Assembly: GCA_026770705.1 (NCBI GenBank)
Contig: JANJGN010000052.1
Location: 2,294,001-2,358,000 of the forward strand
DNA length: 64,000 bases
Reading direction: 5' to 3'
Source of the DNA: Isurus oxyrinchus
Lineage: Eukaryota
Of this stretch, positions 11,310-64,000 are shown one piece after another. The notes beneath the pieces are model-generated. The model was given only the letters and a program-made list of their open reading frames with translations, searched no databases and had not been told where the DNA came from. The position numbers and the translations under genes were made by a program. Within the stretch, counting starts at the first letter, position 1. Each line of letters starts with the position of its first letter.

Positions 11310-13380
11310 GAGAGGAGGACATTCAGCAGCTCAAGCCTGTTACACAGGAACAGGAGGAGGCCCCATTCAGCCCCCTCGAGCCTGTTACACAGGAACAGGA
11401 GGAGGCCCATTCAGCCCCTCAAGCCTGTTACACAGGAACAGGAGGAGGTCCATTCAGCCCCTCGAGCCTGTTACACAGGAACAGGAGGAGGCCCATTCAG
11501 GCCCTCGAGCTTGTTACACAGGAACAGGAGGAGGCCCATTCAGCCCCTCGAGCCTGTTGCACAGGAACAGGAGGAGGCCCATTCAGCCACTCAGTCCTGT
11601 TACATGAGGACAGGAGAAGGCCCATCAGCCTCATGAGCCTATTACACAGGAACGGGAAGAGGACATTCAGTCCCTCAACACCCTTCCACAGGAACAGGAG
11701 AGACTCTCAGCCCCTCGAGCCTGTTACACAGGAAAAGGAGGAGTCCTATTCAGCCCCATAGAGCCTGTAACACAGGAACAGGAGGAGGCCATTCAGTCAC
11801 CTGAGCCTGTTACCCAGGATCAGGAAGAGCACATTCAGTCTCTCAACCCTCTTACACAGGAATAGGAAACCTATTCAGTCCCTCGTGCCTGTTTTACAGG
11901 ATCAAGAGGAGGCCCATTCTGTCCCCTCGAGCCTGTTACACAGGAACAGGAGGAGGCCCATTCAGCCCCCTCGAGCCTGTTACACAGGAACAGGAGGAGG
12001 CCCATTCTGTCCCCTTGAGCCTGTTACACAGGAAGAGGAGGCCCATTCAGCCTCCACAAGCTTGTTACACAGGAACATTAGGGGCTTCATTCAGCCACTC
12101 AAGCCTGTTCCACATGAACGGGAACAAAAACAAAAATAGCTGGAAAAACTCAGCAGGTCTGACAGGATCTGCGGAGAGGAACACACTTGACGTTTTGGGT
12201 CTGTATGACTCTTCATCAGAACTAAAGGAATCGAGAAATGAGGTGACGTTTTAGCTGGTAGAGGGGGTGGGACAGGTAGAGCTGGATTGTGGGCCAGTGA
12301 TAGGTGGAGGTAAAGAAGAGGTTGCCAAAGATGTGATAGACAAAAGGACAAAGGGGTGTTGATGGTGGTGATATTATCTGAGGAATGTGCTAATGGGGAC
12401 ATTAAGGGTAGAAAGCAGGACGAGCAAGAGACAGATAGTCCTAGTGGGGGTGGGGTGGGGGGAAAGGATTGAAATAGGCTAAAAGGTAGAGATACAACAA
12501 CAGATGTAAAACATTTAAAAATAATGGAAATAGGTGGGAAAAGAAAAATATATGAATAAGAAAAATATTAAAAATGATAAATTATTGGAAAAAGGGAGAT
12601 TGGAAAGGGGGTGGGGATGGAGGAGAGAGTTCATGATCTGAAAGTGTTGAACTCAATATTCAGTCCGGAAGGCTGTAAAGTGCCTAGTCGGAAGATGAGG
12701 TGTTGTTCCTCCAGTTTGCGTTGGGCTTCACTGGAACAATGCAGCAGGCCAAGGACGGACATGTGGGCATGAGAGCAGGGTGGGGTGTTAAAATGGCAAG
12801 CGACAGGGAGGTCTGGGTCATGCTTGTGGACAGACCGAAGGTGTTCATGAGAGCGATCACCCAGTCTGTGTTTGGTCTGTCCCATGTAGAGGAGACCACA
12901 TTGGGAGCAGTGAAGGCAGTAGATTAAATTGAGGGAAGTGCAAGTGAAATGCTGCTTCCAATGATGCTCCTAATGTACTCGAGCCTGGTACACAGGAACT
13001 GGGGAAGGCCAATTCAGCCCCTTTAGCCTTTTACACAGGAACAGGAGGAGGCCCACTCAGCCCCTCGAGCCTATAACACAGGAACAGGAGGAGGCCCACT
13101 CAGCCCCTCGAGCCTATAACACAGGAACAGGAGGAGGCCCACTCAGCCCCATGAGCCTGGTACACACTGAGAGAAGGAGGCCATTCAGCCCACCTGAGCC
13201 TGTTGCACAGGAAAAGGAGACCCATTCAGTCCCTTGAGCCTATAACACAGGAACAGGAGGAGACCCATTCAGCCCTCTCAAGCCTGTTACACAGGAACAG
13301 GAGGAGGCCCGTTCAGCCCCTCGAGCCTGTTACTCAGGAACAGGAAGAGGCCCATTCAGTCCCTCGAGCTTGTTGCATGT
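11310..13380. repeat. About 43-45-bp minisatellite (cctcgagcctgttacacaggaacaggaggaggcccattcagcc), split by the Penelope insertion
   Basis: Tandem units at 11310-12120 and 12975-13380. Confidence 0.9.
12124..12960 (-). mobile_element. Penelope-like retroelement 3' end (GIY-YIG endonuclease C-terminus plus terminal repeat)
   Basis: ORF 12631-12885 reads GQTKHRLGDR..EHLRSV..PVACHFN..RKLEEQHLIFRLGTLQPSGLN. Absent from the duplicate block at 45.9-47.2 kb. Confidence 0.85.
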
Positions 13381-14768: not shown

Positions 14769-15472
14769 GTAATATCATCATCAGCTCGGACAGATATATG
14801 TTTAACAGTCTTTGTAAAAGATCATTCTTATCTCTTTATCTCTGTAACCTCCTGCAACTCACCCAAACAACTTCCCAGATCTCTGTGTTACTCCAATTCC
14901 GGCCTCTTGACCATCCCCCGATTCCCATCACTCCAATACTGGCGGCCGGGCCTTCAGCTGCCTGGGGCCTGAGCTCTGGAATTCACTCCCTAAACCTCGG
15001 GGATGGAGGAGCTCAAGAGGGTTTCATTTTACTGAGAATCACCACGACCACATCACAGCTGCAGTCAGAATAGACAGAGGGTCCAGCCCTCGCACTTCCT
15101 GCACAGTTTCACCATAGCAACCACAATATGGAAATTTAAAAATACTGAAAGTTAAACTGAAGCTCAAACCAGTCAGTTTAGAGAGATGAGATGTTTACAC
15201 AGTTTCCCTGTGTATCTTGTAGACACTGTGTTGGGTGGAAGACTGGCTTCACTAAACAGGGTCCTGAGGACCATGAGCCAATGTAGAATGAACTTGTCCA
15301 CTCCTGTGTCCAGGATTCTCTTCCATCCATTGTGAAACCTTGGGGGGTTCTTTGTGTGTCCTGTAGATGGTCCACACTGCAGCCACTGTGCCCCAGTGAT
15401 GGAGAGGGTGGATATCGAGTCTAGTGGATCTACAAACCTTCCAGAGTTAAATATTGACATTTATCTCCATAG

Positions 15473-15846
15473 TTGGACTGTCACAAGATTGAAAAGGCGA
15501 CACTTCACGAGAGGTGACAGCGCAGGATGGTTGTGTGTACAGATTCCATGTCATTACAGTTACTTATCAAATTTCATAGGGAGATCACGTGTCGGAATCT
15601 GCTTGAAAGGAATAGATGGGAACCCACAGCCGAAATGGTCTATAGCCTTTCATTCCGAGGGTCACAGTCACAGGGATCAAAGATTCCACCATCGGACCCG
15701 GCTGTCTGGAGACCTGAAAGATGGCGACTGTTCCCTGATTATAAACAACATCAGACGGGAAGATGCAGGAACTTATTTTTTCAGAATAGAATTTGACAGC
15801 AGGAATAGATACAACTACTATCCTGTAACCCAGCTTCACGTTTCTG
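15473..15846 (+). pseudogene. Gene B V-set exon V4, disabled
   Basis: Reads VGLSQD-TGA (stop at the conserved Trp) and has a 1-bp deletion (ggttgtgtg versus ggttcgtgtg); the downstream part retains YFFR. Confidence 0.85.
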
Positions 15847-16315
15847 GTAAGTGCTGTGTTATGATTACTCAACAATTCACATTCAACACTCAATGGGAGA
15901 TAACACAAACTGTGACGTTTACATATTAACACAAAATGCAGCTTATTATAACTTGCTATCTGATTCTCAATAACCTGGTGATAGCTTCCAGTTCAGTCCT
16001 AAAGCAACCTCTAATACTCACTTTAATATCAATGATGAAAAGCATTAACTGTATTATCAGGTTACCACTCCCATCAATCTCTCCTGTCCTGTTTAAAAGT
16101 CTGACATATCGATAAAAGAAAGATGTGCATTTCTGTAGCGCAATTTACCACCTCAGGAGGATCCAAATCCCTTCACAGCCATTGAAATTATTCCTGAATT
16201 GTAGTCACAGATGTTAAACACAGCAGGCAGTTTGTGCACAGCAAGATCCAACAAACCACAATGTAATAAATCACCCAGATCACTGAGGAAATGAGAAGCC
16301 AGTGAACTCAAACCT

Positions 16316-19439: not shown

Positions 19440-20010
19440 GTCTATGCTGTCTCTGTGTAGAGCAATCCACTCAGTCCCATTCCCCCGCTCTATCCCCGTA
19501 TCCCTGCATGTTTATTTCCAAGTGTCCATCCAATTTCCTTTTGAAATCGTTCATCGTCTCCACTTCCACCATCCTCGTAGGCAGCAAGTTCCAGCTCATT
19601 ACCACTCGCTGTGTAAAAAAGCTCCTCCTCACATCCCCCCACTGCCCACAACCTTCAATCTGTGTCCCCCAGTCCTTGTACCATCAGCTAATGGCAACAG
19701 CTTCTCTTTGTCTACCGTATCTAAACCCATCATCATCTTGTACACCTCGATCAGATCCCCCCTCAATCTCCTTTGCTCCAAGGAGAACAACCCCAGCTTC
19801 TCCAACCCAACCTTGTAGCTAAAATCCCTCATCCCTGGACCCATTCTGCTCAATCTCCTCCCCACCCTCTCAAGGACCCTCACTTCCTTCCCAAAGTGAG
19901 GAGACCAGAACTGGACACAATACTCTAGCTGTGACCTAACCAGAGCTTTATAAATGTTCAGCATAACCTCCCTGTGTTTGTACTCAATCCCTCGATTTAT
20001 GAAAAGCTTA
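19440..20010 (-). mobile_element. CR1-like LINE 3' end
   Basis: ORF 19629-20054 reads YKALVRSQLEYCVQFWSPH...LGLFSLEQRRLRGDLIEVYK. Confidence 0.85.
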
Positions 20011-20719
20011 TTCTTTCCATCAGCACAAACAGCAATTTCCAAGCGGACTCCCATCAGCAGACAGAGTGCAATGAAACATCGGCATGCCTGCTTCTTAATG
20101 TACGGAGAGAAACCTGCAACGAGAGATTCTCCTTCTTCTCCTCAGCAAGCTGAAACTTTTCCTTATACCTGGTGCTCCCCAGTCCTGCTGTGTGGACACA
20201 TCATAACCACGGCATTGTCTGGCTGTGTGCAGCCAACATGGTCGAATAGGAATGAACAGAAATGTGACATTGCTAAACTCTGTTCTCTGATTGGAATGTG
20301 CTTTCTGAATGCTGCACCTTTTTCATGCTGCGATAGATTGTAAGAAGCATTTGGGTTATGAATAAAATTACATTGATTAACACAAGTGATTAAAATGTTC
20401 AGCCTTTTCTGTAGATACTTATGGATTAAAATTCTTATTTTGCTGCCAGATTCTTGGCTCAAAGACATTATTTCATGTTGTCACTTTTTCCAGTCAGATG
20501 AATTCCTGTGGCCATCTTTATAATGGAAATTTTCAATGTAAACACGTCACATTGCAGCTGCACACTCCTGTCAGTGGTGGTGCCATTCCAAAACTGTCTT
20601 GCTGCACCAACACAGTGAGAATTATTCTCGACATGTACATGATGTTGTTGTTACACAGACATCAGGCGGAATCTTGGGCTGTGTCTAGAATGCACTTAGG
20701 ACATTGCAGACCACGCACA

Positions 20720-27185: not shown

Positions 27186-27406
27186 ACAAACAGGGTCCTG
27201 AGGACCATGAACCAATGTAGAATGAACTTTTCCGCTTTTGTGTCCAGGATTCTCTTCCATCCGGTGTGATACCTTGTGGAGTTCATTGTGTGTCCTGTAG
27301 ATGGTCCACACTGCAGCCACTGTGCCCGAGTGATGGAGGGGGTGGATATCGAGTCTAGTGGATCAACAAAACATCCAGAGTTAAATATTGATATTTCTCT
27401 CCCCAG

Positions 27407-27784
27407 TTGGACTGTCACAAGAGTGGAAAGGTGACACTCCACGAGAGGTGACAGCGCAGGAAGGTTCGTGTGTACAGATTCCATGTCATTACAGTTATCC
27501 ATCAGATTTGGTAAAGAAACCACATGTCGGAATCTGGAAAATGAGAAGATACATACGGAACAAATGGTCTAAATGGTCTATAGCCTTTCACTCCAAGGGT
27601 CACAGTCACGAGTTATCACAGTTCCACCATCGGACCCGGCTGTCTGGAGACCTGAAAGATGGCGACTGTTCCCTGATTATAAACAACATCAGACGGGAAG
27701 ATGCAGGACCTTATTTTTTCACGATAAAATTTGGCAATGGTCCGAGACATAACGTTTCCCCTGAAACCCAGCTTCAGGTTTCTG
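27407..27784 (+). CDS. Gene C first V-set exon V5 (VGLS type): open frame, donor mutated GT>CT, YFFR>YFFT
   Basis: 378 bp, phase-1 acceptor; ends TCTG|CTAAGT where all paralogues have TCTG|GTAAGT. Confidence 0.7.
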
Positions 27785-28039
27785 CTAAGTGCTGCGTTAT
27801 AATTACTCACCAATTCACATCCAACACTCAATGGGAAATAATAGTGTTTGATTTGCTTGTTTTTTAGCCGTGTTAACCAGCGTCACTATTTTTAATGATT
27901 TGTCTATTTCTGCTCCCAGATCCATGAGCTTATTGTGTGTGATTGAATCCACATCATAGCTGTAACGTAAACCGAGCTGAGGGGTGATGACACCTCCCCC
28001 CTGAGTGAAGTGTCTCCTCCCCACTACACCTTCCACCCC

Positions 28040-30870: not shown

Positions 30871-30975
30871 TTTCCTCAGTATTGATCATCCCCCCAATTC
30901 AGCCTCATCAGTAAATTTTGAATCTAGTGGATCCACAAACCATCCAGAGTTAAATATTGATATTTCTCTCCCCAG

Positions 30976-31344
30976 CTGAACCCTCACAAGAGTGGAAAGG
31001 TGACACTCCACGAGAGGTGACAGCGCAGGAAGGTTCGTGTGTACAGATTCCATGTCATTACAGTTATCCATCGTGTCTGGAAAACCAACCGCGAGGTGGA
31101 GTCTGGTTTAATAATGAGGAACAGATTCCCTGGGCTCCCATTGCCTTTCACTCCAAGGAACACAGTCACGAGTTACCACGGTTCCGCCATCGGACCCGGC
31201 TGTCTGGAGACCTGAAAGATGGTGACTGTTCTCTGATTATAAACAACATCAGACGGGAAGATGCAGGACCTTATTTTTTCAGAATAGAATTTGACAATGG
31301 TCCGAGCCATAACTATTACCATGTAACCCAGCTTCACGTTTCTG
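30976..31344 (+). CDS. Gene C second V-set exon V6 (AEPS type), intact
   Basis: 369 bp, AG/GTAAGT, phase 1-1; YFFR retained; nearly identical to V1. Confidence 0.88.
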
Positions 31345-32157
31345 GTAAGTGCTGTGTTATAATTACTCAACAATTCACATTCAACACTCAATGGGAAATA
31401 ACACAAACTGTGACGTTTACACATTAACACAAAACACAGCTTATTATAACACACTGTCTGATTCTCAATAACCTGCTAATAGCTTCCAGTTCAGTCCTAA
31501 AACAACCTCTAATACTCACTTTAATATCAATGATTAAATGTATTGACTGTGTCCATCAATGTTATCAGGTTATCCACTTACATCAATCTCCCTAATCCTG
31601 TTTAAAATTCTTACATATCAACAAAAGAAAGATTTGCATTTCTATAGCGCCTTTCACCACCTCTGGACGTCGCAAATGGATTCACAACGATTGAAATAAT
31701 TCTTGAAATGTAGCCCTTGTTGTAATATAGGAAACACAGCAGCCAATTTGTGCACAGGAAGCTCCCAGAAACAGCAATGTGATCAATAACCTGATCATCT
31801 GTTTTAAATGCCGGTTCAGTGATTGGTTCAAATGGATTCTCTCCTGGTGGCGACAGGATAGAATTGAAATCTGGCAGATTTCAGAGAAAGTAACAAGCCA
31901 GTGTGTCAGGAACTGTGAGCTGCTCCCCCGCCCTCACCTGGGATTGTCAATTCAATTATCTCAAAGTGGAAGTGAATTCATCTGAGTGACAGAAATTCCA
32001 CTAAGTCTGAAAATAGGAAATTCTCTCCTGATCATTGTAACCTCTCAGATCTGATATCATCCTTGTAAAATTGCTTTCTCTTGTGGGACTGTGATTTCTA
32101 TTTGAACTGATGCTTCACGTTATATTTCTCTAAAAGGATCCATTCTCTGTCTGTTAG

Positions 32158-36817: not shown

Positions 36818-37099
36818 ATGGACCACAGAATCTCTCAATTACTTCTCTTGATGTGATTAACGCTTCATCGGTCAATATAATTGAGGAGAATTCTGCAGTG
36901 ATAATCTGCTCTGTCGAGAGCTTCCCAGCTTCTAATCTGACGTGGCGACATCTTAATGTCCCATTGAACAGAACAAGATCCAACAATGAGCTGTGGTTGG
37001 TGATTCCTCACGTTACATCCAGGGACACTGGAGACTATCAGTGTGTGGCAGAGAATGAACATGGAGCAGTGGAGGGGTTCATAACCATCACTGTGGAAC
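36818..37099 (+). CDS. Gene C C2/I-type Ig repeat exon 1
   Basis: 282 bp, phase 1-1; GPQNLSI..SAVIICSVESFPASNLTW..DTGDYQCVAENEHG. Confidence 0.88.
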
Positions 37100-38226
37100 G
37101 TGAGTTAAAGCAAACTTCAACATCACTCTCACATATTCACACACACACACATACACATACACACATGCATACAAACAAGAATTCATGTGCTCCCACATGT
37201 GCACAGGTGTGCACGCCTGTATGCTTACACACAGAAGCATACATACAGAATCACACGTGTGCTTGCTCACACACACCGACATGTGTGTGTTGTCTGTTCT
37301 CCCTGTGCTGCACTGGAGTGTTGCTCCAGATTCTGCTCTGAAACACTGACGACATCAGCTGAACAAGACCCTGTATTGGACGAGCAGTCACCTGCACAGA
37401 GAATTGTAGGTTTATCACTCAATACCCCATTATTCTAAAGCAATTCCTCCACTGTCAAATCCCTGTTAACATCCTGAAGATGTGAAAGACATTTTCTTTT
37501 CTTCTAGCCCGTCAGTGTCTCCTCTGGTGGAAGGCTGTAATTACAGCGTGACAGTTTACATATCCACATGCAGCAAGAGCTGAACAACACTCAGCTTGGG
37601 CTGAGAAATGACAAGTAATGTTCATGCCACACAAGTACCAGGCAGTGATCATCTCCAACAAGAGAGAATCTAACCATCTTCCCTTGATATTCATTGAATT
37701 TACCATCGCTGAATCTCCCACGATCAACATCCTGGGGGATGTTAACCAAACACCTAACTGGACCGGCCATAAATACTGTGGCTACAGGGGCAGGTCAGAG
37801 GCTGGGGAGTCTGTGGGGGGGAATAACTCACCACCACCTTCTATAAGACCATAAGACATAGGAGGAGAAATTAGGCCATTCAGCCTATCGAGTCTGCTCC
37901 ACCATTCAATCATGGTTGATAAGTTTCTCAACCCCATTCTCCAGCTTCTCCCCATAACCTTTGATCCCCTTACCTATCAAGAATCTATCTATCTCGGTCG
38001 TAAATACACTTCACAAGGGCAATTAGGGATGGGTAATAAATGCTGGCCTAACCAGCGACACCCACTTCCTTTGAATGTACAAATAGAAAAATACATGCAG
38101 TGACCATCATTAATGTTGACATAGGAACTTATAATGGGGATGATACTTTGGAATGCACATGGACACCAGAAAGAGAGAGACGAAGCATTGAGTCTTCCTC
38201 ACAATGAAATCTTTATTTGTTTTTAG

Positions 38227-38597: not shown

Positions 38598-39500
38598 ATA
38601 AACAGGTGCACGCAAACATGCGTTCATATTCAATCCCATGTCTGCACAGGTGTGCACGCCTGTATGCTCACACACACAAGCATACATACAGAATCACACG
38701 TGTGCTTACTCACACACACACAGACATGTGTGAGTTGTCTGTTCTCCCTGTGCTGCACTGGAGTGTTGCTCCAGATTCTGCTCTGAAACACTGACGACAT
38801 CAGCTGAACAAGACCCTGTATTGGACGAGCAGCCCCCTGCACAGAGAATTGTAGGTTTATCACTCAATACCCCATTATTCTAAAGCAATTCCTCCACTGT
38901 CAAATCCCTGTGAACATCCTGATGATGTGAAAGACATTTTCTTTTCTTCTAGCACAACAGTGTCTCATCTGGTGGAAGGCTGTAATTACAGCGTGACAGT
39001 TTACATATCCACATGCAGCAAGAGCTGAGCAACTTTCAGCTTGGGCTGAGAAATGACAAGTAATGTTCATGCCACACAAGTACCAGGCAGTGAACATCTC
39101 CAACAAGAGGCAATCTAACCATCTCCCCTTGATATTCAATCACTTTACCATTGCTGAATCCCCTACCATCAACATCCTGGAGGATGTTAACAAAACAACT
39201 AACTGGACCGGCCATAATAACTGTGGCTTTAGGAGCAGGTCAGAAGCTGGGAAATCTGTTGGGGTGAAAAACTCACCACCAGCTTCTCAAGGACAATTAG
39301 GGATGGGTAATACATGTTGGCCTAACCAGTGACACCCACTTCCCATGAATGTCCCTAAAGAAACACACCAGCCGTGACCATTATAGATGTTGACATAGTA
39401 ACTTATAATGGGTAAGATACCTTGAAATGAAAGCAGATACCAGATAGAGAGAAATGAAGCGTGGAGCCTTGTTCACAATGAAATCTTTATATGTTTTCAG

Positions 39501-39782
39501 ATGCACCACGGAATCTCTCAATTACTTTTCTTGATATGATTAACACTTCATCGATCAATATAATTGAGGGGAATTCTGCAGTGATAATCTGCTCTGTCGA
39601 GAGCTTCCCAGCTTCTAACCTGACGTGGCGACATCTTAATGTCCCAATGAACAGAACCAGTTCCAACAATGAGCTGTGGTTGGTGATTCCTCACGTGACA
39701 TCCAGGGACACTGGAGACTATCAGTGTGTGGCAGAGAATGAACATGGAGCAGTGGAGGGGTTCATAACCATCACTGTGGAAT
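39501..39782 (+). CDS. Gene C Ig repeat exon 3
   Basis: 282 bp, AG/GTGAGT, open frame. Confidence 0.88.
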
Positions 39783-40769
39783 GTGAGTTAAAGCAAACTT
39801 CAACATCACTCACATACACACACATATACACACACACACACACATACACACACACACAGACACATGCACACAAACAAGCATTCATGTGCAATCCCACATG
39901 TGCACAGGTGTGCACGCCTGCATGCTCACACACAGAAGCATACATACAGAATCACACATGTGCTTGCTCACACACACACAGACATGTGTGAGTTGTCTGT
40001 TCTCCCTGTGCTGCACTGGAGTGTTGCTCCAGATTCTGCTCTGAAACACTGACAATATCAGCTGAACAAGACCCTGTATTGGACGAGCAGTCACCTGCAC
40101 AGAGAATTGTAGGTTTATCACTCAATACCCCATTATTCTAAAGCAATTCCTCCACTGTCAAATCCCTGTGAACCTCCTGATGATGTGAAAGACATTTTGT
40201 TTTCTTCTAGCCTGACAGTGTCTCCTCTGGTGGAAGGCTGTAATTACAGCGTGACAGTTTACATATCCACATGCAGCAAGAGCTGAATAACACTCAGCTT
40301 GGGCTGAGAAATGAGAATTAATGCATCACAAGCACCAGGCAGTGATCATGTCCAACAAGAGAGAATCTAACCATCTCCCCTTGATGTTCAGTGAGTTTAC
40401 TATCACTGAATCCCCCACAATCAACATCCTGGGGGATGTTAACCAAACACCGAACTGGACCGGCCATAAATACTGTGGCTACATGAGCCTGTCAGAGGCT
40501 GGGAATCCTCTGGAGGTGAAAAACTCACCACCACCTCCTCAAGGGCAATTAGGGATGGGTAATAAATGCTGGTCTAGATAGATACATCCACTTCCCATGA
40601 ATATGCAAAAAGGAACACACTGGCAGTGTCTGTTACAAATGGTGACATAGAAACTTATAATGGAGAAAGAAGCCTTGACATGCACATAGACACCAGATGG
40701 AGAGAGACGATACCTGGAGTCTTGCTGTGCACTGTGTTTGCTCACAATGAAACCTTTATTTGTTTTTAG

Positions 40770-41051
40770 ATGCACCACGGAATCTCTCAATTACTTCTCT
40801 TGATTTGATTAACGCTTCATCGATCAATATAATTGAGGGGAATTCTGCAGTGATAATCTGCTCTGTCGAGAGCTTCCCACCTTCTAACCTGATGTGGCGA
40901 CATCTTAATGTCCCAATGAACAGAACAAGTTCCAACAATGAGCTGTGGTTGGTGATTCCTCATGTTACATCCAGGGACACTGGAGACTATCAGTGTGTGG
41001 CAGAGAATGAACATGGAGCAGTGCAGGGGTTCATAACCATCACTGTGGAAT
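40770..41051 (+). CDS. Gene C Ig repeat exon 4
   Basis: 282 bp, AG/GTGAGT, open frame. Confidence 0.88.
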
Positions 41052-41089
41052 GTGAGTTACACAGAGTTGAACGTTCTCTTGTTATTAGC

Positions 41090-42120
41090 TCATGGGATGT
41101 GGGCATTGTTGACAAGGCCAGAAATTATTGCCCATCTGTAACTGCCCCTTGAGAAGGTGGTGGTGAGCTGCCTTCTTTAACCACTGCAGTCCATGTGGTG
41201 TAGGCACACCCACAGTGCTGTTAGGGAGGGAGTTCCAGGATTTTGACCCAGCAACGGTGAAGGAACGGCCGATATAGTTCCAAGTCTCATAGAAGATCAA
41301 CACCTCAAGTTCACCTCCAAGTCACACACCACACTGACTTGGAACTGTCTTGGTGGAAGAGGTTAAGGGTTTGGAAGGTGCTGTCGAAGGAGCCTTGGTG
41401 TGTTGCTGCAGTGCATCTTGTAGATGGTGCACACTGCTGCCATTGTGTGCCAATGGTGGAGGGTATGAATGTTTATGCTGGTGGATGGGCTGTCGATCAA
41501 ACAAGCTGCTCCTGGATGGTGTCGAGCTTCTTGAGTGTTGTTGGAGCTGCACTTATTCAGGAAACTGGAGATTATTCCATCACACTCCTGACTTGTGCCT
41601 TGTCGATGGTGGAAAGGCTTTGGGGAGTCAGGAGGTGAGTTACTCACCGCAGAGTTCCCAGCCTCTTACCCGCTCTTGTAGCCACATTATTTCCTGTTGC
41701 CGGGTTGTTGCCAGGGCCAATAGCATTTGCTGTATCCAGTATCATCAGCTGATTCCTGATGTCACGTGGAGTCAATCGAATTGTCTGAAAGCTGACATCT
41801 GTGATGCTCGGACCCTCTGGAGGAGGCCGAGATGGATCATCCACTCAGCACTTCTGGCTGAACATGGTTTCCAATGCTTCAGCCTTGTCGTTTGCACTGA
41901 TGTGCTGAGCTCCCCCATCATTAAGGATGGGGATATTTGTGGAACATCCTCCTCCTGTTAGATCTTTAGTTGTCCATCACCATTCATGACTGGATGTGGC
42001 AGGACTGCAGAGCTTAGATCTGACCCGTTGGGATCGCTTTGCTCTGTCTATAGCATGATGTTTCCGCTGTTTGGTGTGTATGTAGTCCTGTGTGTCACCT
42101 CAGCAGCTTGGCACCTCTGT
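41090..42120 (-). mobile_element. Non-LTR retrotransposon fragments
   Basis: KSWNSLPNSTVGVPTPHGLQ..KKAAHHHLLKG; same family as 53.1-55.1 kb. Confidence 0.7.
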
Positions 42121-45899: not shown

Positions 45900-47160
45900 T
45901 GACAGGAGGACATTCAGCCTCTTGATCCTGTTACACAGGAACAGCAGGAGGCCATTCAGCCCCCTCGAGCCTGTTACACAGGAACAGGAGGAGGCACATT
46001 CAGCCCCCTCGAGCCTGTTACACAGGAACAGGAGGAGGCCCATTCAGCCCCCTCGAGCCTGTTACACAGGAACAGGAGGAGGCACATTCAGCCTCCTCGA
46101 GCCTGTTACACAGGAACAGGAGGAGGCCCATTCAGCCCCCTCGAGCTTGTTACACAGGAACAGGTGGAGGTCGAATCAGCCCCCTCGAGCTTGTTACACA
46201 GGAACAGGAGGAGGCCCATTCAGCCCCCTCGAGCTTGTTACACAGGAACAGGAGGAGGCCCATTCAGCCCCCTCGAGCTTGTTACACAGCAAGAGGAGGA
46301 GGTCCATTCAGCACAGGAACAGGATTAGGACAATACAGCCCCTCGAGCCTGTTACACAGGAACAGGAGGAGGCCTATTCAGCCACTCAAGCCTCTTACAT
46401 GAGGACAGGAGAAAGCCCATCAGCCTCTTGAGCCTATTATACAGGAACAGGAAAAGGACATTCAGTCCCTCAACACCCTTCCACAGGAACAGGAGAGAGT
46501 CTCAGCCCCTCGAGCCTGTTACCCAGGAACAGGAAGAGGACATTCAGTCTCTCAACCCTCTTACACAGGAATAGGAAATCCATTCAGCCCCCTCGAGCCT
46601 GTTACACAGGAACAGGAGGAGGCCCATTCAGCCCCCTCGAGCCTGTTACACAGGAACAGGAGGAGGTCCATTCTGTCCCCTTGAGCCTGTTACACAGGTA
46701 CAGGAGACCCATTCAGCCTCCACAAGCTTGTTACACAGGAACATTAGGGGCTCCATTCAGCCCCATCAAGCCTGTTACACAGGAACAGGAGGAGGCCATT
46801 CAGCCCCTCGAGCCTGTTACACAGGAACAGGAGGAGGCCCATTCAGCCCCTCAAGCCTGTTACACAGGAACAGGAGGAGGCCCATTCAGCCACTCAAGCC
46901 TGTTATTACAGGAACAGGTGGAGGCCCATTCAGACCCTCTAACCTGTAACACAGGAACACAAGGAGATCCATTCAGCCCCTCGAGCCTGTTACACAGGAA
47001 CAGGAGGAGGCCTATTCGGACACTCGAGCCTGTTACACAAGGACAGGGGGAGGGCATTCAGCACCTGGAGCCTGTTACACAGGAACAGGAGGAGGTCCAT
47101 TCAGCTACTCACACCTGTTACACAGGAACAGGAAGAGGCCCAGTCAACCCCTCGAGCTTG
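45900..47160. repeat. About 43-45-bp minisatellite (duplicate of 11.3-13.4 kb)
   Basis: Same unit as 11.3-13.4 kb. Confidence 0.9.
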
Positions 47161-47267
47161 TTGCATGTGAACAGTCGATGGCCCTTCAACCACATTCTTG
47201 GCACGCAAAGGGCTAACAGTTTTCTAACAGTGCGAGGCAAAGAGCTGCTTTCACACTTGGTACCAAG

Positions 47268-47407
47268 CACTTCCAATTTTGTCTCACAGAGACACATCCA
47301 CCCCTTCTAATTAAACACAAATAGGGAGCAGCACAGGAAGAGGTCATTCAGCCCAAGCAGAGCGTGTGGGCAGTTCCTCCCCAGGCGAGCAGTCGGACAG
47401 GTCCTGG
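47268..47407 (+). promoter_or_regulatory. 5' exon module of gene D; PU.1 core altered (cttccaatttt)
   Basis: Homologous to 13480-13619 and 14139-14278. Confidence 0.45.
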
Positions 47408-52754: not shown

Positions 52755-55290
52755 GGCACTAGGCCAGTGATCCAGAGGCCCAGGTGAATGCTTTGGAGGT
52801 ACGGGTTCAAATCCCACCACGGCAGCTGGAGGAATTTAGATTCGATTAATCAATAAATTTAATTGATTGATACATTTTTTTCTTATTCATTTCAGGGATG
52901 TTGGTGTCGCTGACTAGGCCAGTATTTGTTGCCCATCCCCATTTGCCATTGAGAAAATATGGATATCTGAGTTAGGATCAGGAGTAGGTCACTCAGTCCC
53001 TCGAACCTGCTCCGCCATTCAGTAAGATCATGGCTGATCTGATTGTCACCTCAACCTCACATTCCTGCCTACCCCCAATGACCTTTCACCCCATTGTTAA
53101 TCAAGAATCTATCTAGCTCTGTGGAAGGGGAGCCAATCAATCGGGCTGCTTTGTCCTGGATGGTGTCAAGCTTCTTGAGTGTTGTTGGAGCTGCACTCAT
53201 CCAGGCATGTGGAGAGTATTCCATCACACTCCTGACTTGTGCGTTGTAGATGGTGGACAGGCTTTGGGGAGTCAGGAGGTGAGTTACTGTCTGCAGGGTT
53301 CCCAGCCTCTGACCTGCTCTTACAGCCACAGTGTTTAAATGGCTGGTCCAGTTCAGTTTCTGCTCAATGGTAACTCCCAGCATGTTGATATTGGGGGATT
53401 CAGTGATGGTAATGCCATTGAATGCCAAGGGGCGATGGTTATGAATGGTCTGTGGGATATTCTGGTACAAAATGTCAACACTCGGACTCCAGATGCAATA
53501 TTCAAGTGGTTCCTTTATTACGCATGTGGGGAGCAAACGCTGGGCAGTCCAGGCGCTTCTCCACCGAGGTTCAAATGAGCACAGTTTATATATTTTTTAC
53601 TCTCAGTTACAAGGTAATGGTATTAGTTAGACAAAGGCCACAGCACAATGACCCTCCAGTGGGCTGATAATTGTGTTCTTGTACAGTAATTACAGGGCAG
53701 AGACTGGCTATTGTCCTTTTGAGACAGCAAAGAATCTATGTTTGTTCAATACAAAAGGTTTCCGGGGGCTGACTGGATGTGGTTCAAGGCCATCGGACGG
53801 TGTGAAATAACCTTCCCCATTTCTTGATTGAGTCACCCAGTGTCCTTGTGTGTGTGTCTCCCATTTCCTCATTGCAAATTTACAGCTGAGCCCTTTGTAC
53901 AGGTTTTTAGCTTTCACGTAAGGATGTGTATGCTTTGGCGCCCTAGCTGCTGGTCCTGGCTGGCTCTTTAAAATAAATCCAAATTTTCAGCGCCTTCAGT
54001 TAGATTCTCTCTTGTTGGAGCTGGTCATTGCCTGGTACTTGTGTGGCATGAATGTTACTTGTCACCTGTCAGCCCAAGCCTGGATGTTGTCCAGGTCTTG
54101 CTGCATTTGGACATAACTTGCTTCAGTATCTGAGGAGCCGTGAATGGTGCTGAACATTGTGCAAACATCAGCAAACATCCCCACTTCTGACCTTATGATG
54201 GAAGGAAGGACATTGATGAAGCAGTTGAAGATGTTTGAGCCTAGGACACTACCCTGAGTAACTCCTGCAGTGATGTCCTGGAACTGAGATGATTGACCCC
54301 CAACAATCACAACCATCGTCCTTTGTGCTGGGTATGACTCCAAGCAGCGGAGAGTTTTCCCCCGATTCCCATTGACTCCAGTTTTGCTCGGGCTCCTTGT
54401 TTTGCCACACTCAGTCAAATGCTGCCTTGATGTCAAGGGCAGTCACTCTCACCTCACCTCTGGAGTTCAGCTCATTTATGCATGTTTGAACCAAGGCTGT
54501 AATGAGGCCAGGAGCTGAATGATCCTGGTGGAACACAAACTGAGCGTCAGTGAGCAGATTCTTGCTAAGCAGGTGCTGCTTGCAAGCACTGTTGATGACC
54601 CCTTCCATCACTTTAGTAATGATCAAGAATAGACTGCTGGGGAATTGGCTGGGTTGGATTTGCCCTGCTTTTTGTGTACAGGACGTACCCCATAGCCAGG
54701 TAGTTGCCAGTGTTGCAGCTGTACTAGAAAATTCCAGAAAAGCTTGGCTAGGGGCGCAGCAAGTTCTGGAGCACAAGTCTTCAGTACTATTGCCGGAATA
54801 ATGTCAGGGTCTGGAGCATTTGCAATATCCAGTGCCTTCAGCCCTTCCTTGATATCACGTGGAATTAATCGAATTGGCTAAAGATTGGCATCTGTGATGC
54901 TGGGGACCTCAGGAGGAGGCCGAGATGGATCACCCACTCAGCACTTCTGGCTGAAGATTGTTGTGCATGCTTCAGTCTTGTCTTTTGCACCGATGTGCTG
55001 GGCTCCTCCATCATTGAGGATGGGGATATTTGTGGAGCCTCCTCCTCCAGTGAGTTGTTTAATTGTCCACGACTGGATGTGACATCTGGAATGCGAAGCT
55101 AGTCTCAGTAATGGTGACCATGAAACTAAGGCCAATTGTTGCAAAAACCCATCTGGGTCACTAATGCCCTTTGGGGAAGGAAACCTGCCGTCCTTACCCA
55201 TTCTGGCCTACGTGTGACTCCTGACCCACAGCAATGTGGTTGACTCTTAACTGGCCCCTGAAATGGCCGAGCAAGCCACTGAGTTATATC
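52755..55290. mobile_element. HE1-like tRNA-derived SINE (52755-52860 and 55085-55290) split by a minus-strand LINE (about 52890-55080), itself interrupted at about 53450-54000
   Basis: B-box gggttcaaatccc; the SINE body resumes at aatggtgaccatgaaac. RT motifs ALDIKAAFD, AGVTQGSVLG, MFAD and TESPNINMLGVTIEQKLNW. Confidence 0.65.
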
Positions 55291-57540: not shown

Positions 57541-57614
57541 AACAAAGAAGTTTACATTATAAACACTATAAACACAGGTTAGATTAAAAGTGCAGTATAT
57601 TGGTACAAAGATAG

Positions 57615-57900
57615 GTCATAATGAAAACTTCAATATGAGATCGTCACTAATAAATCCAATGGGGAATTCAGGAGAAATATCTTTACCCAGACAGTGGGGA
57701 GAATGTGGAACTCGCTCCCACAGAGAGTGGTCGAGGTGAATAGTGTCGATGTATTTAAGGGGAAGCTGGATAAACACACGAGGGAGAAATGAATAGAAGG
57801 ATATGGTGATGGGGTGAGATGGAGAAGGGGTGGGCGGAGACTCGTGTGGAGCAGAAACTCCAGCATGGAACAGATGGGCCAAATGGCTTCTTTCCCTGCT
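57615..57900 (+). mobile_element. CR1-like LINE 3' tail
   Basis: ttcaggagaaatatctttacccagacagtggggagaatgtggaactc...gatgggccaaatggc. Confidence 0.65.
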
Positions 57901-58031
57901 GTAAAACGCAGGTAAAGTTTCAGTTGGAATTAATGAACAGGGCCTGTGTGAAATAGATTGCTAAGCAGTAGATAAGGAGGGGAGAGGCTGTGGCATGGTG
58001 CAGGATGACCTTGCGTGAATGAGGCCAGGGT

Positions 58032-58148
58032 CTAATATCTACAGCAGATACCACAAGTCTCATTTGGTTCTCTCCAATTACAGCAGTTACAGCAGAATCT
58101 GCAGTGCCGCTGTCTGCTCATTCTCTTCTGGCGCTGCAGCAAGGAGCC
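58032..58148 (-). CDS. hamp: Hepcidin-like gene exon 3 (furin site plus mature 8-Cys peptide)
   Basis: cttttccAG acceptor, phase 0, 117 bp: GSLLQRQKR-MSRQRHCRFCCNCCNWREPNETCGICCRY*. The C-x2-CC-x-CC-xn-C-x2-CC pattern is the hepcidin signature. Confidence 0.9.
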   Translation of the reverse strand, partial: GSLLQRQKRMSRQRHCRFCCNCCNWREPNETCGICCRY

Positions 58149-58609
58149 CTGGAAAAGCAGGAGGACAATAGGTGAGAACATTCCGGAAAGAAAGAAGGCA
58201 TCATTTCAATCAGGCGCGTCATTGGAAGGAGGATGGCGCATTTCTATAGCGCCTTTCCCCTCCTCAGGATGGCCCAAAATGTTCAACAGCTGAAGGAAGG
58301 ACGTTTTCTGAAGTGAGCACACCGCTGTAATGTAGGAAACGCAGCAGGCAATTCACGCACAGCAAGATCCCACAAACAGAAATGTGATAATGGCCCCGAT
58401 TTTCAGTTTTTTACCAATGTCAGTTGAGGGATAAATGTTTGCCCCAGGAAAGCGGACATAACTCCACCCCATCCACCCCCCATCACCCCCTCCACACATA
58501 CCCCCAACTCCTGACGCACTTCATTTAAATTGTGGCCATGGAATCCTCTACATCCATCTGAGAGGGCAGATGTTGTCTCAGTTTAACATCTCATCTGAAA
58601 GACAGCGCC

Positions 58610-58915
58610 TTCAACAGTGCAGCACCCCCTCAGTACTGACCCTCCGACTGTGCAGCACTCCCTCAGTACTGACCGTCTGACAATGCAGCACCCCCTCAGT
58701 ACTGACCCTCCAACAGTGCAGCACTCCCTCAGTACTGACCGTCTGACAATGCAGCACCCCCTCAGTACTGACCCTCCGACTGTGCAGTCCCCCGCCGGTA
58801 CTGACCCTCTGACAGTGCAGCACTCCAAGACTGACCGTCTGACAATGCAGCACCCCCTCAGTACTGACCCTCCGACTGTCCTGCCCCCCCGCCGGTACTG
58901 ACCCTCCGACAGCTC
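58610..58915. repeat. 33-bp minisatellite in hepcidin intron 2 (another at 60920-61130)
   Basis: agtactgaccctccgactgtgcagcactccctc units. Confidence 0.85.
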
Positions 58916-59759
58916 GGTAATTTCTCAATTATGCCTGGTGGTCCTTTTAACTCAGAGCTGAGAGTTGCAGAGAATCGAGCACACATCCTGAACTGACACT
59001 TGCAGTGCAAGTACTGGGAGCGCGCTGGTCATTATCATGCTGCTGTCTGTGGGATCTTACTGTGCGCCAATGGCTGATTCTTTTCCCACATTACATCAGT
59101 GACCTCACATGAAAGAAAAAAAGCACTTGATTGTCTGCGAAACACTTTGGGATGTCCTGATGTGTTGGAAGGCGCTAGAGAAATGCAAGTCCTCTTTGTC
59201 TTTCACTCGATCCTCTAAGGTGTCTGTTGATTAACCAGCCTCTCGGTGTATGATGTAGGCCTAGTTATAAACAGTTAGAAGGATCAAATATCAAAAATGC
59301 TTTGGCTGACAGTCAAACCGATTGTGCATTCGGAGAGATGAGATACGGTCTGCACACAATGACTCCAGTCTCTGGCACTGACTGCCGCCTGGGGTCTCCC
59401 TTCCACATAACACTCACAACTTGCATTTACACAGCGCCTCTGACATTGCAAAATGTCCCAGCCCACATTACCGGAGCGTAAATCAGAGAGAAGTCTAACA
59501 CTGAGTCACATATGGAGATATTAGGGTTAGGTGACCAAAAGCTTGGTCAAAGATGTCAGTTTTTAAGGAGCGTCTTAAAGGAGAGAGAGAGAGAGAGGCA
59601 GAGAGGTTAAGGGAGGGTATTCCGGAGCTCAGGGCCCCAGGCAGCTGAAGGCACGGCCGCCAATGGTGGAGCGATGGGAATCAGGGGGACCCGGGAGATG
59701 CAGTAATGTCAGAGATTTTGGAGGAACATCGGGACCGGAGGAGGTGTTCTCCTGCTCCA

Positions 59760-60220
59760 TATATCTCTCTCTCTTCCTCTCATCCACTCCTCCTCTCCCT
59801 GTCTCTCTCTCTCCTACTCTTCCGCTCAATTGCCCTCTCTCCCAATCTTTCTCTCCTCTCTCCCTTTTCCTGTCTCTCTCCCTCTCTCTCTCCCTGTCTC
59901 CTTCTCCCACTCTGTATCTCTCCCTCTCTCTCACACTATTTTTGTACCTTTCGCTCACTCTGTAACTCTCCCTTCCCTGTTAATTTCTCTCTCTTGGACA
60001 ATCTCTCTTCTCTTTTCACTTTCCCTCACTCTGCATCTCTTCTTTAATTTCTCCCTCTGTCACTCTCTCCCACCTATGTTCTTTCCCTTTCACCCCTCCC
60101 CGTCCCACTCTCTGTCTCTCTCTTCCAATCCCTCCCTCCCCCATTCCATCCCTCTCTCCGACTCTCGACTCCCAGCCTCTCTTTAACCCACTCCCAGGCT
60201 GGATCAGTCTCCCTCTCACT
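59760..60220. repeat. CT-rich low-complexity tract
   Basis: (TC)n-like composition. Confidence 0.85.
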
Positions 60221-60449
60221 ATTCCCGGCGTGGGTTACATTTAAAATTCCTGTGGGGATATGTTCACTTCCTTGGAATTGCCTCTTCCCAGCTTTGCAAA
60301 AAAAGGGGGCGGGGGGGGTTCGATTTCAAACATGCCTCCTGAGTATAACCGAGACAGACTGCCACTGAAATCAGCTTGAAATCAGAAAACTTTCTGTGGA
60401 AGAAACGAGCAGGGAGAAACCTTAAAATAAGGAATGAATTTCCACCTAC

Positions 60450-60506
60450 CGTGTCCGGGGAATCCACAGATTTCTCAATCGTCGAAGAACCTAAAGCAGT
60501 GTCAAC
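60450..60506 (-). CDS. hamp: Hepcidin-like exon 2 (prodomain) VDTALGSSTIEKSVDSPDT
   Basis: ttctttttgcAG acceptor and ACG|GTAGGT donor; 57 bp, phase 0-0, matching the short phase-0 middle exon of HAMP genes. Confidence 0.72.
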
Positions 60507-61204
60507 CTGCAAAAAGAAAGAATTTATCAGGGAGAAAGTGAGAGGAGGATTGAGGGAGAGGGAGAGAGAGAGAGAGAGGTACAGGAGAGAGAGGGGGAGG
60601 AGGACAGACTTGCATTTCTCTAACGCCTTTCACCACATCCCAAAGCATTTCACAGCCACTGAAGGATGTTTTTGAAGTGCACTCACACTGTAGGAAATGT
60701 GGCAGCTGATTTGTGCACAGCAAGATCCCACAAGTAGCAATGTGATCATGGCCTAGATCATCTGTTTTTGGTGATGTTGGTTGAGGGATAAATATTGGTC
60801 CCAGGACACTGGGGAGAACACCCCCTGCTCTTCCTCCAAATAGTGGCTGTGGGATCTTTCACACCCGCCCGAGAGGGCAGACGGGGGACTCGGTTTAATG
60901 TCTCATTCAACATTGTTGTGCTCCCTCAGTACTAACCCTTTGACACTGCAGCACTCCCTCAGTACTGACCCTCCGACAGTGCAACACTTCCACAGTACTG
61001 ACCCTGTAACAATGCAGCACTTCCTCAGTACTGACCTCCGACAGTATAGCACTCACTCAGTACTGTCCCTCCAATAGTGCAACACTTCCACACTACTGAC
61101 CCTCTGACAGTGCAGCACTCCCTCAGCACGGAGTGTTGACCGACGTTATGGGACTGAATTCCGTGGAGTGAGACTCAGACCAGAGATTTAGGTAGGGTTG
61201 TTCC

Positions 61205-62230
61205 GGCTGGAGGAGGTTACAGAGATAGGGAGGGTTGTAGAGGCTGTAGAAGGTTACAGAGATAGGGAGGGTTCTAGAGGCTGTAGGAGGTTACAGAGAT
61301 AGGGAGGGTTGTAGGGGCTGTAGGAGGTTACAGAGATAGGGAGGTGAGTAGGGGCTGTAGGAGGTTAAAGAGATGGGGGGGTTGTGGGGCTGGAGGAGGT
61401 TACAGAGGTAGGGAGGGTTGTAGAGGCTGGAGGAGGTTACCAAAATAGATACTGTTGTAGGGGCCACAGTAGGTTACAGAGATAGGGAGAGTTATAGTGT
61501 GGAGAGGACGTTATAGAGTTCATGAGCATTGTAGGGGCTGGAGGAGGTGACAGTGATTCTGAGGGTCGTGGGGCCTGGAGGAGGTTACAGAGATAGGGAG
61601 GGTTGTAGGGTCTGGAGGAGGTTACAGAGATAGGGAGGGTTGTAGGGTCTGGAGCAGGTTACAGAGATAGGGAGGGTTGTAGCGTCTAGAGGAGGTTACA
61701 GTGATCATGAGGGTTGTGGGGCCTGGGGGAGGTTACAGAGATAGGTAGGGTTGTAGGGGCTGGAGGAGGTTACAGAGATAGGGAGGTTTATAGGGGCTGG
61801 AGGAGGTTACAGAGATAGGGAGGGTTGTAGGGGCTGGAGGAGGTTACGGAGATAGGGAGTGTTGTAGGGTCTGGAGGAGGTAACAGAGATAGGGACAGTT
61901 GTAGGGGCTGGAGGAAGTTACAGAGATAGGGACGGTTGTAGGGGCTGGAGGAGGTTACAGATATAGGGAGGGTTGTAGCGGCTGGAGGAGGTTACAGAGA
62001 TAGGGAGGGGTGTAGGGGCTGGAGGAGGTTACAGAGATAGGGAGGGTTGTAAGGCCTGGTGGAGGTTACAGAGATAGGGAGTGTTGTAGGGGCTGGAGGA
62101 GTTTACAGAGATAGGGAGGGTTGTACGGGCTGGAGGAGGTTACAGAGATAGGGAGGGCTGTAGGGGCTGGAGGATTTTACAGAGATAGGGAGGGTTGTAC
62201 GGGCTGGAGGAGGTTACAGAGATAGGGAGT
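61205..62230. repeat. 37-bp minisatellite in hepcidin intron 1
   Basis: ggaggaggttacagagatagggagggttgtaggggct repeated about 27 times. Confidence 0.92.
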
Positions 62231-62406
62231 CGCTGAGGAGGGATTGAAAACAAGAATGAGAATTTCAGGGGAAACGACAGAAGGAAATGATGTTAAATTC
62301 ATAGAGGGCGACAATATTAAAGGCACGAACATAATAATATCAAACTGCGGAAGAGACCAGTCTATCTGGGTGGTAGACGTAGAGTCATGTGCAAGAAACA
62401 CCTCAC

Positions 62407-62523
62407 CCAGAGGGACATCTCTTAGCTTAACCTCGACAAGGAGAAGAAGTGACTCAGCTGCAGGGAGAGCAGCAAAGTCAGAGTGAACAAGACAAGTCGC
62501 CATTTCATCTGGGAGCTTCCCAT
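62407..62523 (-). CDS. hamp: Hepcidin-like exon 1 (signal peptide), apparently disrupted
   Basis: (MGSSQ)MKWRLVLFTLTLLLSLQLSHFFSLSRLS*EMSLW|GTGAGG: hydrophobic signal, phase-0 donor, in-frame TAA at 62422-62424. Confidence 0.6.
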
Positions 62524-62594
62524 CTCTGCCTGTCTCTTCTGATCTTCTGGCTCTGCTTTGATGCTTTGGTTTGTAACTAGAGGAGCTTCCTGCT

Positions 62595-62742
62595 CTTATA
62601 CCTGAAACACTTGAAGGGGACAGCCGCGGGTGGGTAGCTGTGTGGTATCACACCCATTTCTGGATATTGCAGTGTCGATGTTCCCTGTCCCACTGGCCTG
62701 GGACCAGCAGTAAGGTCACTGGGACATTGACTGTCTGGCGCC
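62595..62742 (-). promoter_or_regulatory. Hepcidin promoter: TATA-like TATAAG (62595-62600) and GGCGCC BMP-response-like element (62737-62742) with adjacent GTCT/AGAC
   Basis: Motifs read directly from the sequence, at suitable distances upstream of the ATG. Confidence 0.5.
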
Positions 62743-63469
62743 GAGAACTATCAGTCCCTCCGCAACGCCCTTCACCTTGTGCAAATATGTGTTCATATTG
62801 ACGCAACACAACATAGCAAAAACATAGGGGCTGGTTCTTATGTCGGCAAATCAGGTGAACCGCATGCCCCCTAACCCATTACTCCTCTCATTGCTACACT
62901 TACTATTTTACAAATTGTGTGCGTTGCTTTTATTTTGGACAAGGGGCCTCGAGGGGGAACTGATTTACAATTTGTAACCTCCTCCAGCCCCTACAACACT
63001 CCTTATCTCTGTAACCTCCTCCAGCACCTACAACACTCCTTATCTCTGTAACCTCCTCCAGCCCCTGTAACCCTCCCCATCTCTTGAAGGGTTCTCAAAA
63101 TTTCCAACTGTCAAGGAACCCTGGGTTGGTGAGCGTGACCCCTGACCTCTCCTAGTGCAATTTAGTTAGGGTTTGGGGGTGGGACAAGGGTAAGGGCATT
63201 AGTAGCGTGATTCTCCCTCGTTATGCCGTGTGTTCCCCATTCTTAACTCAGTGTACTTTGTAAGTCTGTATAATCTCAGTGTCATCCTAATGTTAGAAGT
63301 TCATTTGTGACTTCAGTAAACTCAGTTTTTGTCTTGCACCAAAACCAGTTGTCTGCTGCACTTTGTGACAAGCCCCGAATAAGTCCAAGGTCTAGAACCC
63401 AGGGAGTGGGAGCGATTCAGACGGCTCAGAAGTCGCAGGTGAAGCTGACACACACCACCACACCCTACA

Positions 63470-63702
63470 AGGGGCTGAATGGCCTCCTCCTGTTCCTGTG
63501 TAATGGGCTTCAGTGGCTGAATGACCTCCTCCTGTTCCTGTATAACGGACATAAGTGGCAGAATGGCCTCCTCCTGTTTCTGTGTAACAGTCTTGAGGGG
63601 GCTGAATGGCCTCCTCCTGTTCCTGTGTAACAGTCTCGAGGGGGCTGAATGGCCTCCTCCTGTTCCTGTGTAACAGGCTCAAGGGGCTGAATGGCCTCCT
63701 TC
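63470..63702. repeat. About 43-bp minisatellite (reverse orientation)
   Basis: ggctgaatggcctcctcctgttcctgtgtaacag units. Confidence 0.85.
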
Positions 63703-64000
63703 TGCACTGTAAACTTGTTGTGATACTGTAACTGCCTCTTTGGTTTCATTCAGCTGAATCTTCAGCTCTTCAGTCTCTTCCTTGTATCTCTTGCCTTCCT
63801 CCTGGAACATTGGACATGGTTGGGTCTTCCCTGCCAACTGTTTCTTCAGTTTGCTCAGAGCGGCACAGAATTCGCTTTCTTTCTCTTCAGGATTTTCCAG
63901 TGGAACCAACTCTGACCTGAGGGACACTTGCAGCCTGTGAGGATGCTTCAATTCTTCAAACTCATTCCGAGATACACTCTCATATTCCCCCAGCAACTCA
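63703..64000 (-). other. Open coiled-coil-like coding fragment at the window edge; origin unclear
   Basis: About 95 stop-free E/K/L-rich codons (EKESEFCAALSKLKKQL..YKEETEELKIQLNETKEA) ending abruptly at the minisatellite with no clear donor. Confidence 0.35.

Follow-up and report, generated by a model that had tools for sequence, protein, structure and literature searches.

Fish hepcidins and the locus examined

Two hepcidins have been compared in the sea bass, i.e., Hamp1 (QSHLSLCRWCCNCCRGNKGCGFCCKF) and Hamp2 (HSSPGGCRFCCNCCPNMSGCGVCCRF), and only the former regulates ferroportin (PMC5665920). The loop between the fifth and the sixth cysteine usually comprises four residues in human and five in teleosts, and Hamp2 bears the sequon NMS at the place homologous to that of the sequon considered below (PMC5665920). 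This loop lies outside ferroportin, while both termini of the hormone are buried (PMC8235187). In the present work, we analyzed the minus-strand interval 58032–62523 of a 64 kb stretch of DNA (hereafter the window, meaning this stretch in its full length) from a shark-like genome. The interval is a genuine three-exon copy of a hepcidin-family gene, and the loop of its product is twice the usual length. It is probably a donor-damaged member of an expanded family of long-loop hepcidins, the abundant and correctly joined RNA being derived from sister copies with a good donor.

A hepcidin-family peptide with an enlarged loop

A first-pass annotation of this DNA proposed three exons on the minus strand (62523–62431, 60506–60450, and 58148–58032), an RQKR site and a peptide of 29 residues, and all of these are present. 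Exon 3 reaches 31.9 bits with the Pfam Hepcidin profile (PF06446), for which the curated cut-off is 27 (E 1.6e-7; profile positions 24–52 of 53), so that the family check suggested at that time gave a positive answer. The eight cysteines of the 29-residue peptide occupy positions 7, 10, 11, 13, 14, 23, 26, and 27, and this arrangement occurs only once in the six-frame translation of the window. Five residues of the peptide are basic and two are acidic. Compared to the pattern C-x2-CC-x-CC-x(4-5)-C-x2-CC, all spacings are kept except for the loop between Cys5 and Cys6, which consists of eight residues (NWREPNET) and is bridged by HMMER with a gap of four residues. The eight-cysteine pattern, the long loop and the N-E-T sequon previously read from this DNA were thus borne out by the translation; the accompanying statement that a normal loop has about four residues holds for human but not for teleosts.

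The best match in the Protein Data Bank is the 21-residue bass hepcidin 1S6W; with an E value of 0.1 it is statistically weak, and it is clear residue by residue (CRFCCNCC----PNmSGCGVCCRF in 1S6W, CRFCCNCCNWREPN.ETCGICCRY in the peptide). Judging from this alignment, the long loop is best described as a putative four-residue insertion, NWRE, ahead of the conserved PN. All protein searches were run exon by exon, and the joined model of 88 residues was used for codon and stop counts only. A word-indexed protein search with exon 3, which lies in a stop-free stretch of 57 residues, returned no candidate, the index being blank even for the shared CRFCCNCC words. HMMER with the 38 residues of exon 3 retrieved nothing at E <= 0.001 from 1.84 billion representatives, the query being too short for such a library. 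In the ESM Atlas, a hepcidin cluster ranked second with 0.75, under the level that counts. AlphaFold2, run on exon 3 with no alignment, returned helices with a predicted local distance difference test score (pLDDT) of 67 and a predicted template modelling score (pTM) of 0.35, a confidence too low for the fold to be read.

The six residues preceding Cys1 are MSRQRH, and Phe9 is retained. The motif required for ferroportin binding (DTHFPI or QSHLSL, with His3 and hydrophobic residues at positions 4 and 6) is lacking: His3 and the residues at positions 4 and 6 are replaced by Arg, Gln, and His, respectively, and there is no X-X-His copper/nickel site. In this respect, the expanded loop and the missing DTHFP/QSHL-type N-terminus reported in the first pass were both found. 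The peptide shares with the iron-regulatory hepcidins (human hepcidin-25 and fish Hamp1) the Pfam family, the three-exon gene, the signal peptide, the propeptide, the RX(K/R)R site, the six residues before Cys1, a cysteine pattern identical up to Cys5 and after Cys6, and Phe at position 9; it differs from them in the absence of DTHFPI or QSHLSL, in the doubled loop and in the probable presence of many copies instead of one.

The resemblance to teleost Hamp2 and to 1S6W goes further. All share the core CRFCCNCC, and the tails, PN..CG(V/I)CCR(F/Y), are nearly the same; counted by eye, about 16 of the 25 aligned positions agree with Hamp2, compared to about 12 of 25 for Hamp1. Like Hamp2, the shark peptide lacks a QSH-type N-terminus while keeping the CRFCCNCC core (alignment with 1S6W; Hamp2 sequence of PMC5665920), belongs to a multi-copy family and has a sequon at the same position of the loop (NMS in Hamp2, NET here). 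It differs from Hamp2 in the length of the loop (eight residues through NWRE versus five), in its Arg-rich N-terminus (MSRQRH versus HSSPGG) and in the location of its gene, beside Siglec-like genes in a shark-like genome. On these grounds, the peptide appears to be closer to the defence-type teleost Hamp2 than to a ferroportin ligand, given that MSRQRH lacks the hydrophobic, His-containing motif. As hamp2 is specific to teleosts, the likeness would represent retained ancestry or parallel change and not orthology, with an independent origin being probably the case. The sequon had been presented as a special feature that made the loop glycosylatable; since Hamp2 has NMS at the same place, it is neither new nor evidence of glycosylation. 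The natural bass hepcidin is reportedly unglycosylated.

Neither a shark hepcidin with a long loop nor any of three short motifs taken from the peptide was found to have been published, in a literature search outside which most subscription journals lay. A nurse-shark plasma proteome lists hepcidin and gives no detail (PMC9207270), and automatic genome annotation may already be labelling such genes.

Gene structure and the defective first donor

The features of the gene and of its surroundings are listed in Table 1. As in other hepcidin genes, the mature peptide is encoded by the third of three exons, and a signal peptide, a propeptide and an RX(K/R)R site come before it; in this copy, TT stands at the first donor. 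The product of exon 1, inspected by eye, resembles a signal peptide, with a basic n-region followed by a Leu-rich core. No second hepcidin copy was found in the window by a six-frame search for the cysteine pattern or by BLAST of the promoter and exons against it. AATAAA was looked for in the region of the 3' untranslated region (UTR) and none was seen.

Table 1. Features of the hepcidin-family gene (in the order of transcription) and of the neighbouring Siglec-like exons; positions are those of the window.
Feature	Position	Strand	Basis or remark
BMP-response-like element GGCGCCAGACAGTCA	62728..62742	-	pattern match; about 130 nt upstream of TATA box
TATA box TATAAGA	62594..62600	-	read directly
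Exon 1, coding part, 31 codons, ATG at 62523	62431..62523	-	sequence; RNA-like contigs ending exon 1 at 62431
Defective donor, intron 1 opening with TT (GT required)	62429..62430	-	context TCGAGG/TTAAGC
Intron 1	60507..62430	-	1924 nt skipped by RNA joint; acceptor ttgcag
Exon 2, 57 nt, 19 propeptide codons	60450..60506	-	acceptor ttgcag/, donor ACG/gtaggt; RNA joints
Intron 2, GT..AG	58149..60449	-	joint 58147->60449, cut +1, ends CT..AC on + strand
Exon 3, coding part (GSLLQRQKR, mature 29-mer, stop)	58032..58148	-	sequence; Pfam match
RQKR convertase site	58133-58122	-	directly before the 29-mer
Mature 29-residue peptide	58121-58035	-	translation of exon 3
Expanded loop NWREPNET between Cys5 and Cys6	58056..58079	-	translation
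N-E-T sequon	58064-58056	-	translation
Stop codon	58034-58032	-	sequence
3' UTR, down to at least about 57570, crossing a repeat element	57570..58031	-	RNA-like contig past 57600
V-set exons, CD22/Siglec type, near-identical (at least six with the next row)	138-608, 2175-2585, 5491-5958	-	domain matches
V-set exons, CD22/Siglec type, near-identical (continued)	15354-15929, 27388-27867, 30957-31427	+	domain matches
Three near-identical Ig C2/I-set exons	36853-37341, 39491-39991, 40760-41152	+	several N-x-S/T sequons; (CA)n-rich stretch after each

In the RNA-supported joint 60506->62431, 1924 nt are left out, and the skipped part has the ends CT..AA as read on the plus strand, that is, TT..AG on the strand of the gene. 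Joined in this way (62431/60506), the message is in frame and has 88 codons with 0 internal stops, as counted by script. Owing to the TT that follows 62431, the sequence of the window is unable to make this in-frame join canonically. The sole GT at the end of exon 1 (62431–62430) is formed by the last G of the exon and the first T of the intron; splicing there costs the message one base, joins the exons in phase 2 and leads to a stop at codon 36 (script), while retention of intron 1 leads to a stop after 33 codons. Other GT, GC or acceptor sites were tried for a canonical rescue of exon 1, and none preserves the frame of the signal peptide. According to these data, the copy as assembled is able to give only unspliced or frame-shifted RNA and hence no peptide. 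The phase 0/0 exons described in the first pass are therefore found in the RNA, through the 62431/60506 joint, but not in the window, where the donor is TT and the sole GT is in phase 2. Compared to the RNA source, a G>T change at intron position +1, or alternatively the loss of one G, would explain the lesion with the same consequence; with the G>T reverted, AGG/GTAAGC would be a near-perfect donor.

Two kinds of tandem repeat fall within intron 1, namely a 37-bp minisatellite (28 copies, 84% identity, 61189–62229), which makes up half of the intron, and a 33-bp array (60921–61126). Another 33-bp array lies at 58614–58912, and three further 37-bp copies are found upstream of the gene (62973–63084).

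RNA-like contigs and their copy of origin

The contigs of X1 and X2, two runs from one sample of organism A, were examined over positions 57600–63400, with abundance expressed as mean word depth. These runs are listed as guessed RNA only and consist of contigs without raw reads, which means that starts, ends, strand, and copy of origin are not fixed by them. The exon 3 stretch is almost completely present in both runs. Depths of 7e4 to 8e5 are found in the bins of the three exons and of the 3' UTR (1.8e5 to 8e5 in the 3' UTR bins, 57600–57987), compared to 1e1 to 1e3 in the intron bins. Contigs join the exons at 62431/60506 and at 60450/58148; the latter joint, which the first-pass annotation had predicted, has GT..AG ends. 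As their contigs run from exon to exon, X1 and X2 behave like RNA, and transcripts of this gene type rank with the most abundant ones in the sample. Depth begins within the bin 62450–62643 and is 0 in X1 at the bin 62644–62837, so that a transcription start near 62565 fits the position of the TATA box. A minor acceptor of intron 2 at 59260 (joint 59259->60449) accounts for roughly 1–5% of the depth and leads to a stop after nine codons; this joint looks like noise.

At position 60451, the dominant RNA of organism A has A on the plus strand where the window has G, so that the final codon of exon 2 specifies Met instead of Thr; by the base at this position, the window copy or allele can be told apart from the one that is mainly expressed. 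At the exon 2/exon 3 joint, the allele of the window is represented by 0 of the X1 contigs and by about 15% of the depth in X2. Moreover, differences of 1–3% from the window are seen in most of the contigs that cover the introns, and the only contig covering the promoter (X2, 62637–62960, depth 667) has three changes and a 15-nt insertion at 62895. These three differences point to other copies as the source of the RNA, and the hidden gene of the first pass is probably not a lone one. As the promoter-covering contig belongs to a sister copy, some copies are transcribed from further upstream or read through. Thus, the RNA depth over 58032–62523 should not be read as expression of the window copy itself, and, pending base 62430, we propose to annotate the gene as hepcidin-like with its first donor defective, and not as a working one.

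One DNA-like contig from a related organism, B (X5 record 18), aligns over 57968–58192 with 12 changes and no gap. The length of the exon, and with it that of the eight-residue loop, is thus conserved outside the source genome.

Promoter

The element GGCGCCAGACAGTCA is the only match in the window to the composite pattern GGCGCCANNNNGNCV (0.05 expected), which we take to be a bone morphogenetic protein (BMP) activating element. GGCGCC, which occurs only twice in the window, is the motif of both BMP-response elements (BMP-REs) of human HAMP (PMC3879105) and is bound by Smad1/5 (PMC3203580); its presence in the promoter is a further likeness to the iron-regulatory hepcidins. The STAT motif TTCNNNGAA was absent from the promoter in a motif search.

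Damaged copy, working gene or iron hormone

In principle, the following course of events can be depicted for the long-loop family. The TATA promoter would drive a short three-exon transcript, probably in liver, whose first exon would supply a signal peptide leading to secretion of the product. The propeptide, encoded by exon 2 and the beginning of exon 3, ends in RQKR, and a furin-type convertase would be expected to cut there and release the 29-residue peptide; its eight cysteines would form a four-disulfide hairpin with an enlarged and solvent-exposed loop (eight residues instead of four or five, through the NWRE insertion). In the window copy, the coding exons are intact and the TT of intron 1 would block the correct message, leaving the RNA to be supplied by sister copies with a good donor. 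As for the function of the family, we lean slightly toward a defence-type role or one otherwise independent of ferroportin, and the antimicrobial rather than iron-regulatory role suggested in the first pass is plausible in view of the N-terminus and the Hamp2-like core.

Several points weigh against one or the other part of this reading. An old pseudogene would be expected to show further damage, and the coding sequence has none; a single wrong base of the assembly at 62430 would, if corrected, restore a perfect gene. The contigs are unable to assign RNA to copies, and X1 and X2 are only guessed RNA, though the exon–exon joints argue that they are RNA. X1 record 6 (60495–60731, depth 29), in which the acceptor side of intron 1 is the same as in the window, has zero differences from the window copy; this exact match suggests low-level transcription of the window copy or of a twin identical to it. 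On the functional side, the GGCGCCAGACAGTCA element is the one observation that would speak for an iron-type regulation, and a long loop would be no bar in itself to ferroportin binding, as the loop lies outside ferroportin (PMC8235187).

The first group of points leads to the alternative that the T at 62430 arose in the assembly or belongs to a rare allele, and that the copy is, like its sisters, a fully working, highly expressed long-loop hepcidin gene. No damage is seen in the three coding exons, in the promoter or its TATA box, at the acceptors or at the second donor; the pre-mRNA-like contig X1 record 6 is identical to this copy, and X2 does contain RNA with the ACG allele of the window at the exon 2/exon 3 joint (nine contigs, depth 2475). 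However, assembly errors do not typically take the form of a substitution, or of paired changes in length, at a GT outside any homopolymer, and the dominant RNA carries the other allele. We consider this alternative unlikely, albeit worth keeping in mind, and continue to regard the interval as probably a donor-damaged copy.

The second group of points concerns function. The long-loop peptide might be an iron hormone under BMP/SMAD control, acting on a ferroportin, perhaps a second paralogue without an equivalent of Cys326. This would agree with the unique GGCGCCAGACAGTCA upstream of the TATA box and its GGCGCC, shared with the human HAMP BMP-RE (PMC3879105), with an extremely high expression like that of liver hepcidin, with the six residues before Cys1 as in hepcidin-25 and with the conserved Phe9; in addition, the variable loop of hepcidin remains outside ferroportin, and a second ferroportin, in which a different residue takes the C326 position, is known from some cartilaginous fish (PMC8235187). 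Nevertheless, the equivalents of His3, Phe4, and Ile6 are Arg, Gln, and His, with no X-X-His copper/nickel site, and sea bass Hamp2, whose core and N-terminus are of this kind, has no regulatory effect on ferroportin (PMC5665920). It is therefore the N-terminus, and not the loop, that argues against ferroportin binding, since the termini are buried and the loop is not (PMC8235187). The promoter motif, for its part, is one isolated match to a composite pattern. On balance, an iron hormone seems rather improbable. A far bolder proposal would be a second class of shark hepcidin, massively amplified, extremely highly expressed and BMP-regulated, with a doubled and possibly N-glycosylated loop and a new N-terminus, acting as the ligand of a second ferroportin that lacks the Cys326 equivalent; we regard it as very improbable, and, if true, it would constitute a second hormone–receptor pair for iron export.

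Least credible is a bypass of the lesion in which the cryptic GT at 62431–62430 is spliced and a second ATG (62503) is used, giving an 81-residue pro-hepcidin without a signal peptide: the open reading frame from 62503 (MATCLVHS...LLLVE) does end exactly at GAG/GT and in phase 0 with exon 2, but the first ATG (62523, with G at −3 and at +4) would be used before it, the N-terminus of the bypass product contains Asp and Glu and is no signal peptide, the product would remain in the reducing cytosol and be unable to form disulfides, the cryptic donor GAG/GTTAAG is weak, and no joint skipping 1925 nt is found among the best supported joints.

Genomic neighbourhood

Exons neighbouring the hepcidin copy score above threshold for V-set and Ig_CD22 (PF24518), and others are of the C2/I-set type, so that the locus lies next to Siglec-like genes. 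The human gene order is USF2-HAMP-MAG-CD22, and mammalian HAMP in general has MAG and CD22 next to it; the V-set/Ig_CD22 neighbours agree with this position, which is another feature shared with the iron-regulatory hepcidins. The near-identical V-set exons on both strands suggest that the Siglec-like genes have been multiplied and inverted around the hepcidin copy. Taken together, the Pfam match, the three exons, the signal peptide, the RX(K/R)R site and the CD22/Siglec-like neighbours uphold the previous assignment to the hepcidin family, but not that of a clean and intact gene, the first donor being TT.

Tandem or segmental multiplication of hepcidin genes, with diversified mature peptides, is also known from perciform fish such as the large yellow croaker (PMC6240063). 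In comparison, the present copies belong to a cartilaginous-fish-like genome, appear to be scattered among Siglec-like clusters and seem, in some cases, to have splice lesions.

The CpG observed/expected ratio of the window is 0.32, which is vertebrate-like. Fragments of CR1-like long interspersed nuclear element (LINE) reverse transcriptase are present on the minus strand at 19632–20054 and 53069–54776. The best named relative of the former is from the bamboo shark Chiloscyllium punctatum (60% identity, versus 44–52% for bird elements), which weakly supports a cartilaginous fish as the source. A 42-bp tandem repeat occurs at 63469–63704, 45922–47310, and 11109–11636, one frame of which reads ...PVTQEQEEA(H/I)SAP... 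Just upstream of the promoter, the minus strand of 63700–64000 might, by eye, be Glu/Lys-rich coding sequence; the translation of 63401–64000 on this strand has seven stops. A run of N is located at 3394–3575.

Significance for the hepcidin family

The copy in the window adds little to the long-loop family beyond its donor lesion. Hepcidin first appears in jawed fish, and the hepcidins of sharks thus show what the ancestral gene could do. If highly expressed hepcidins with a doubled loop and without a ferroportin-type N-terminus do exist in this lineage, the split between “iron” and “other” hepcidins would not be a teleost speciality. The long-loop family would, in turn, represent a natural test of the loop length that a four-disulfide hairpin tolerates.

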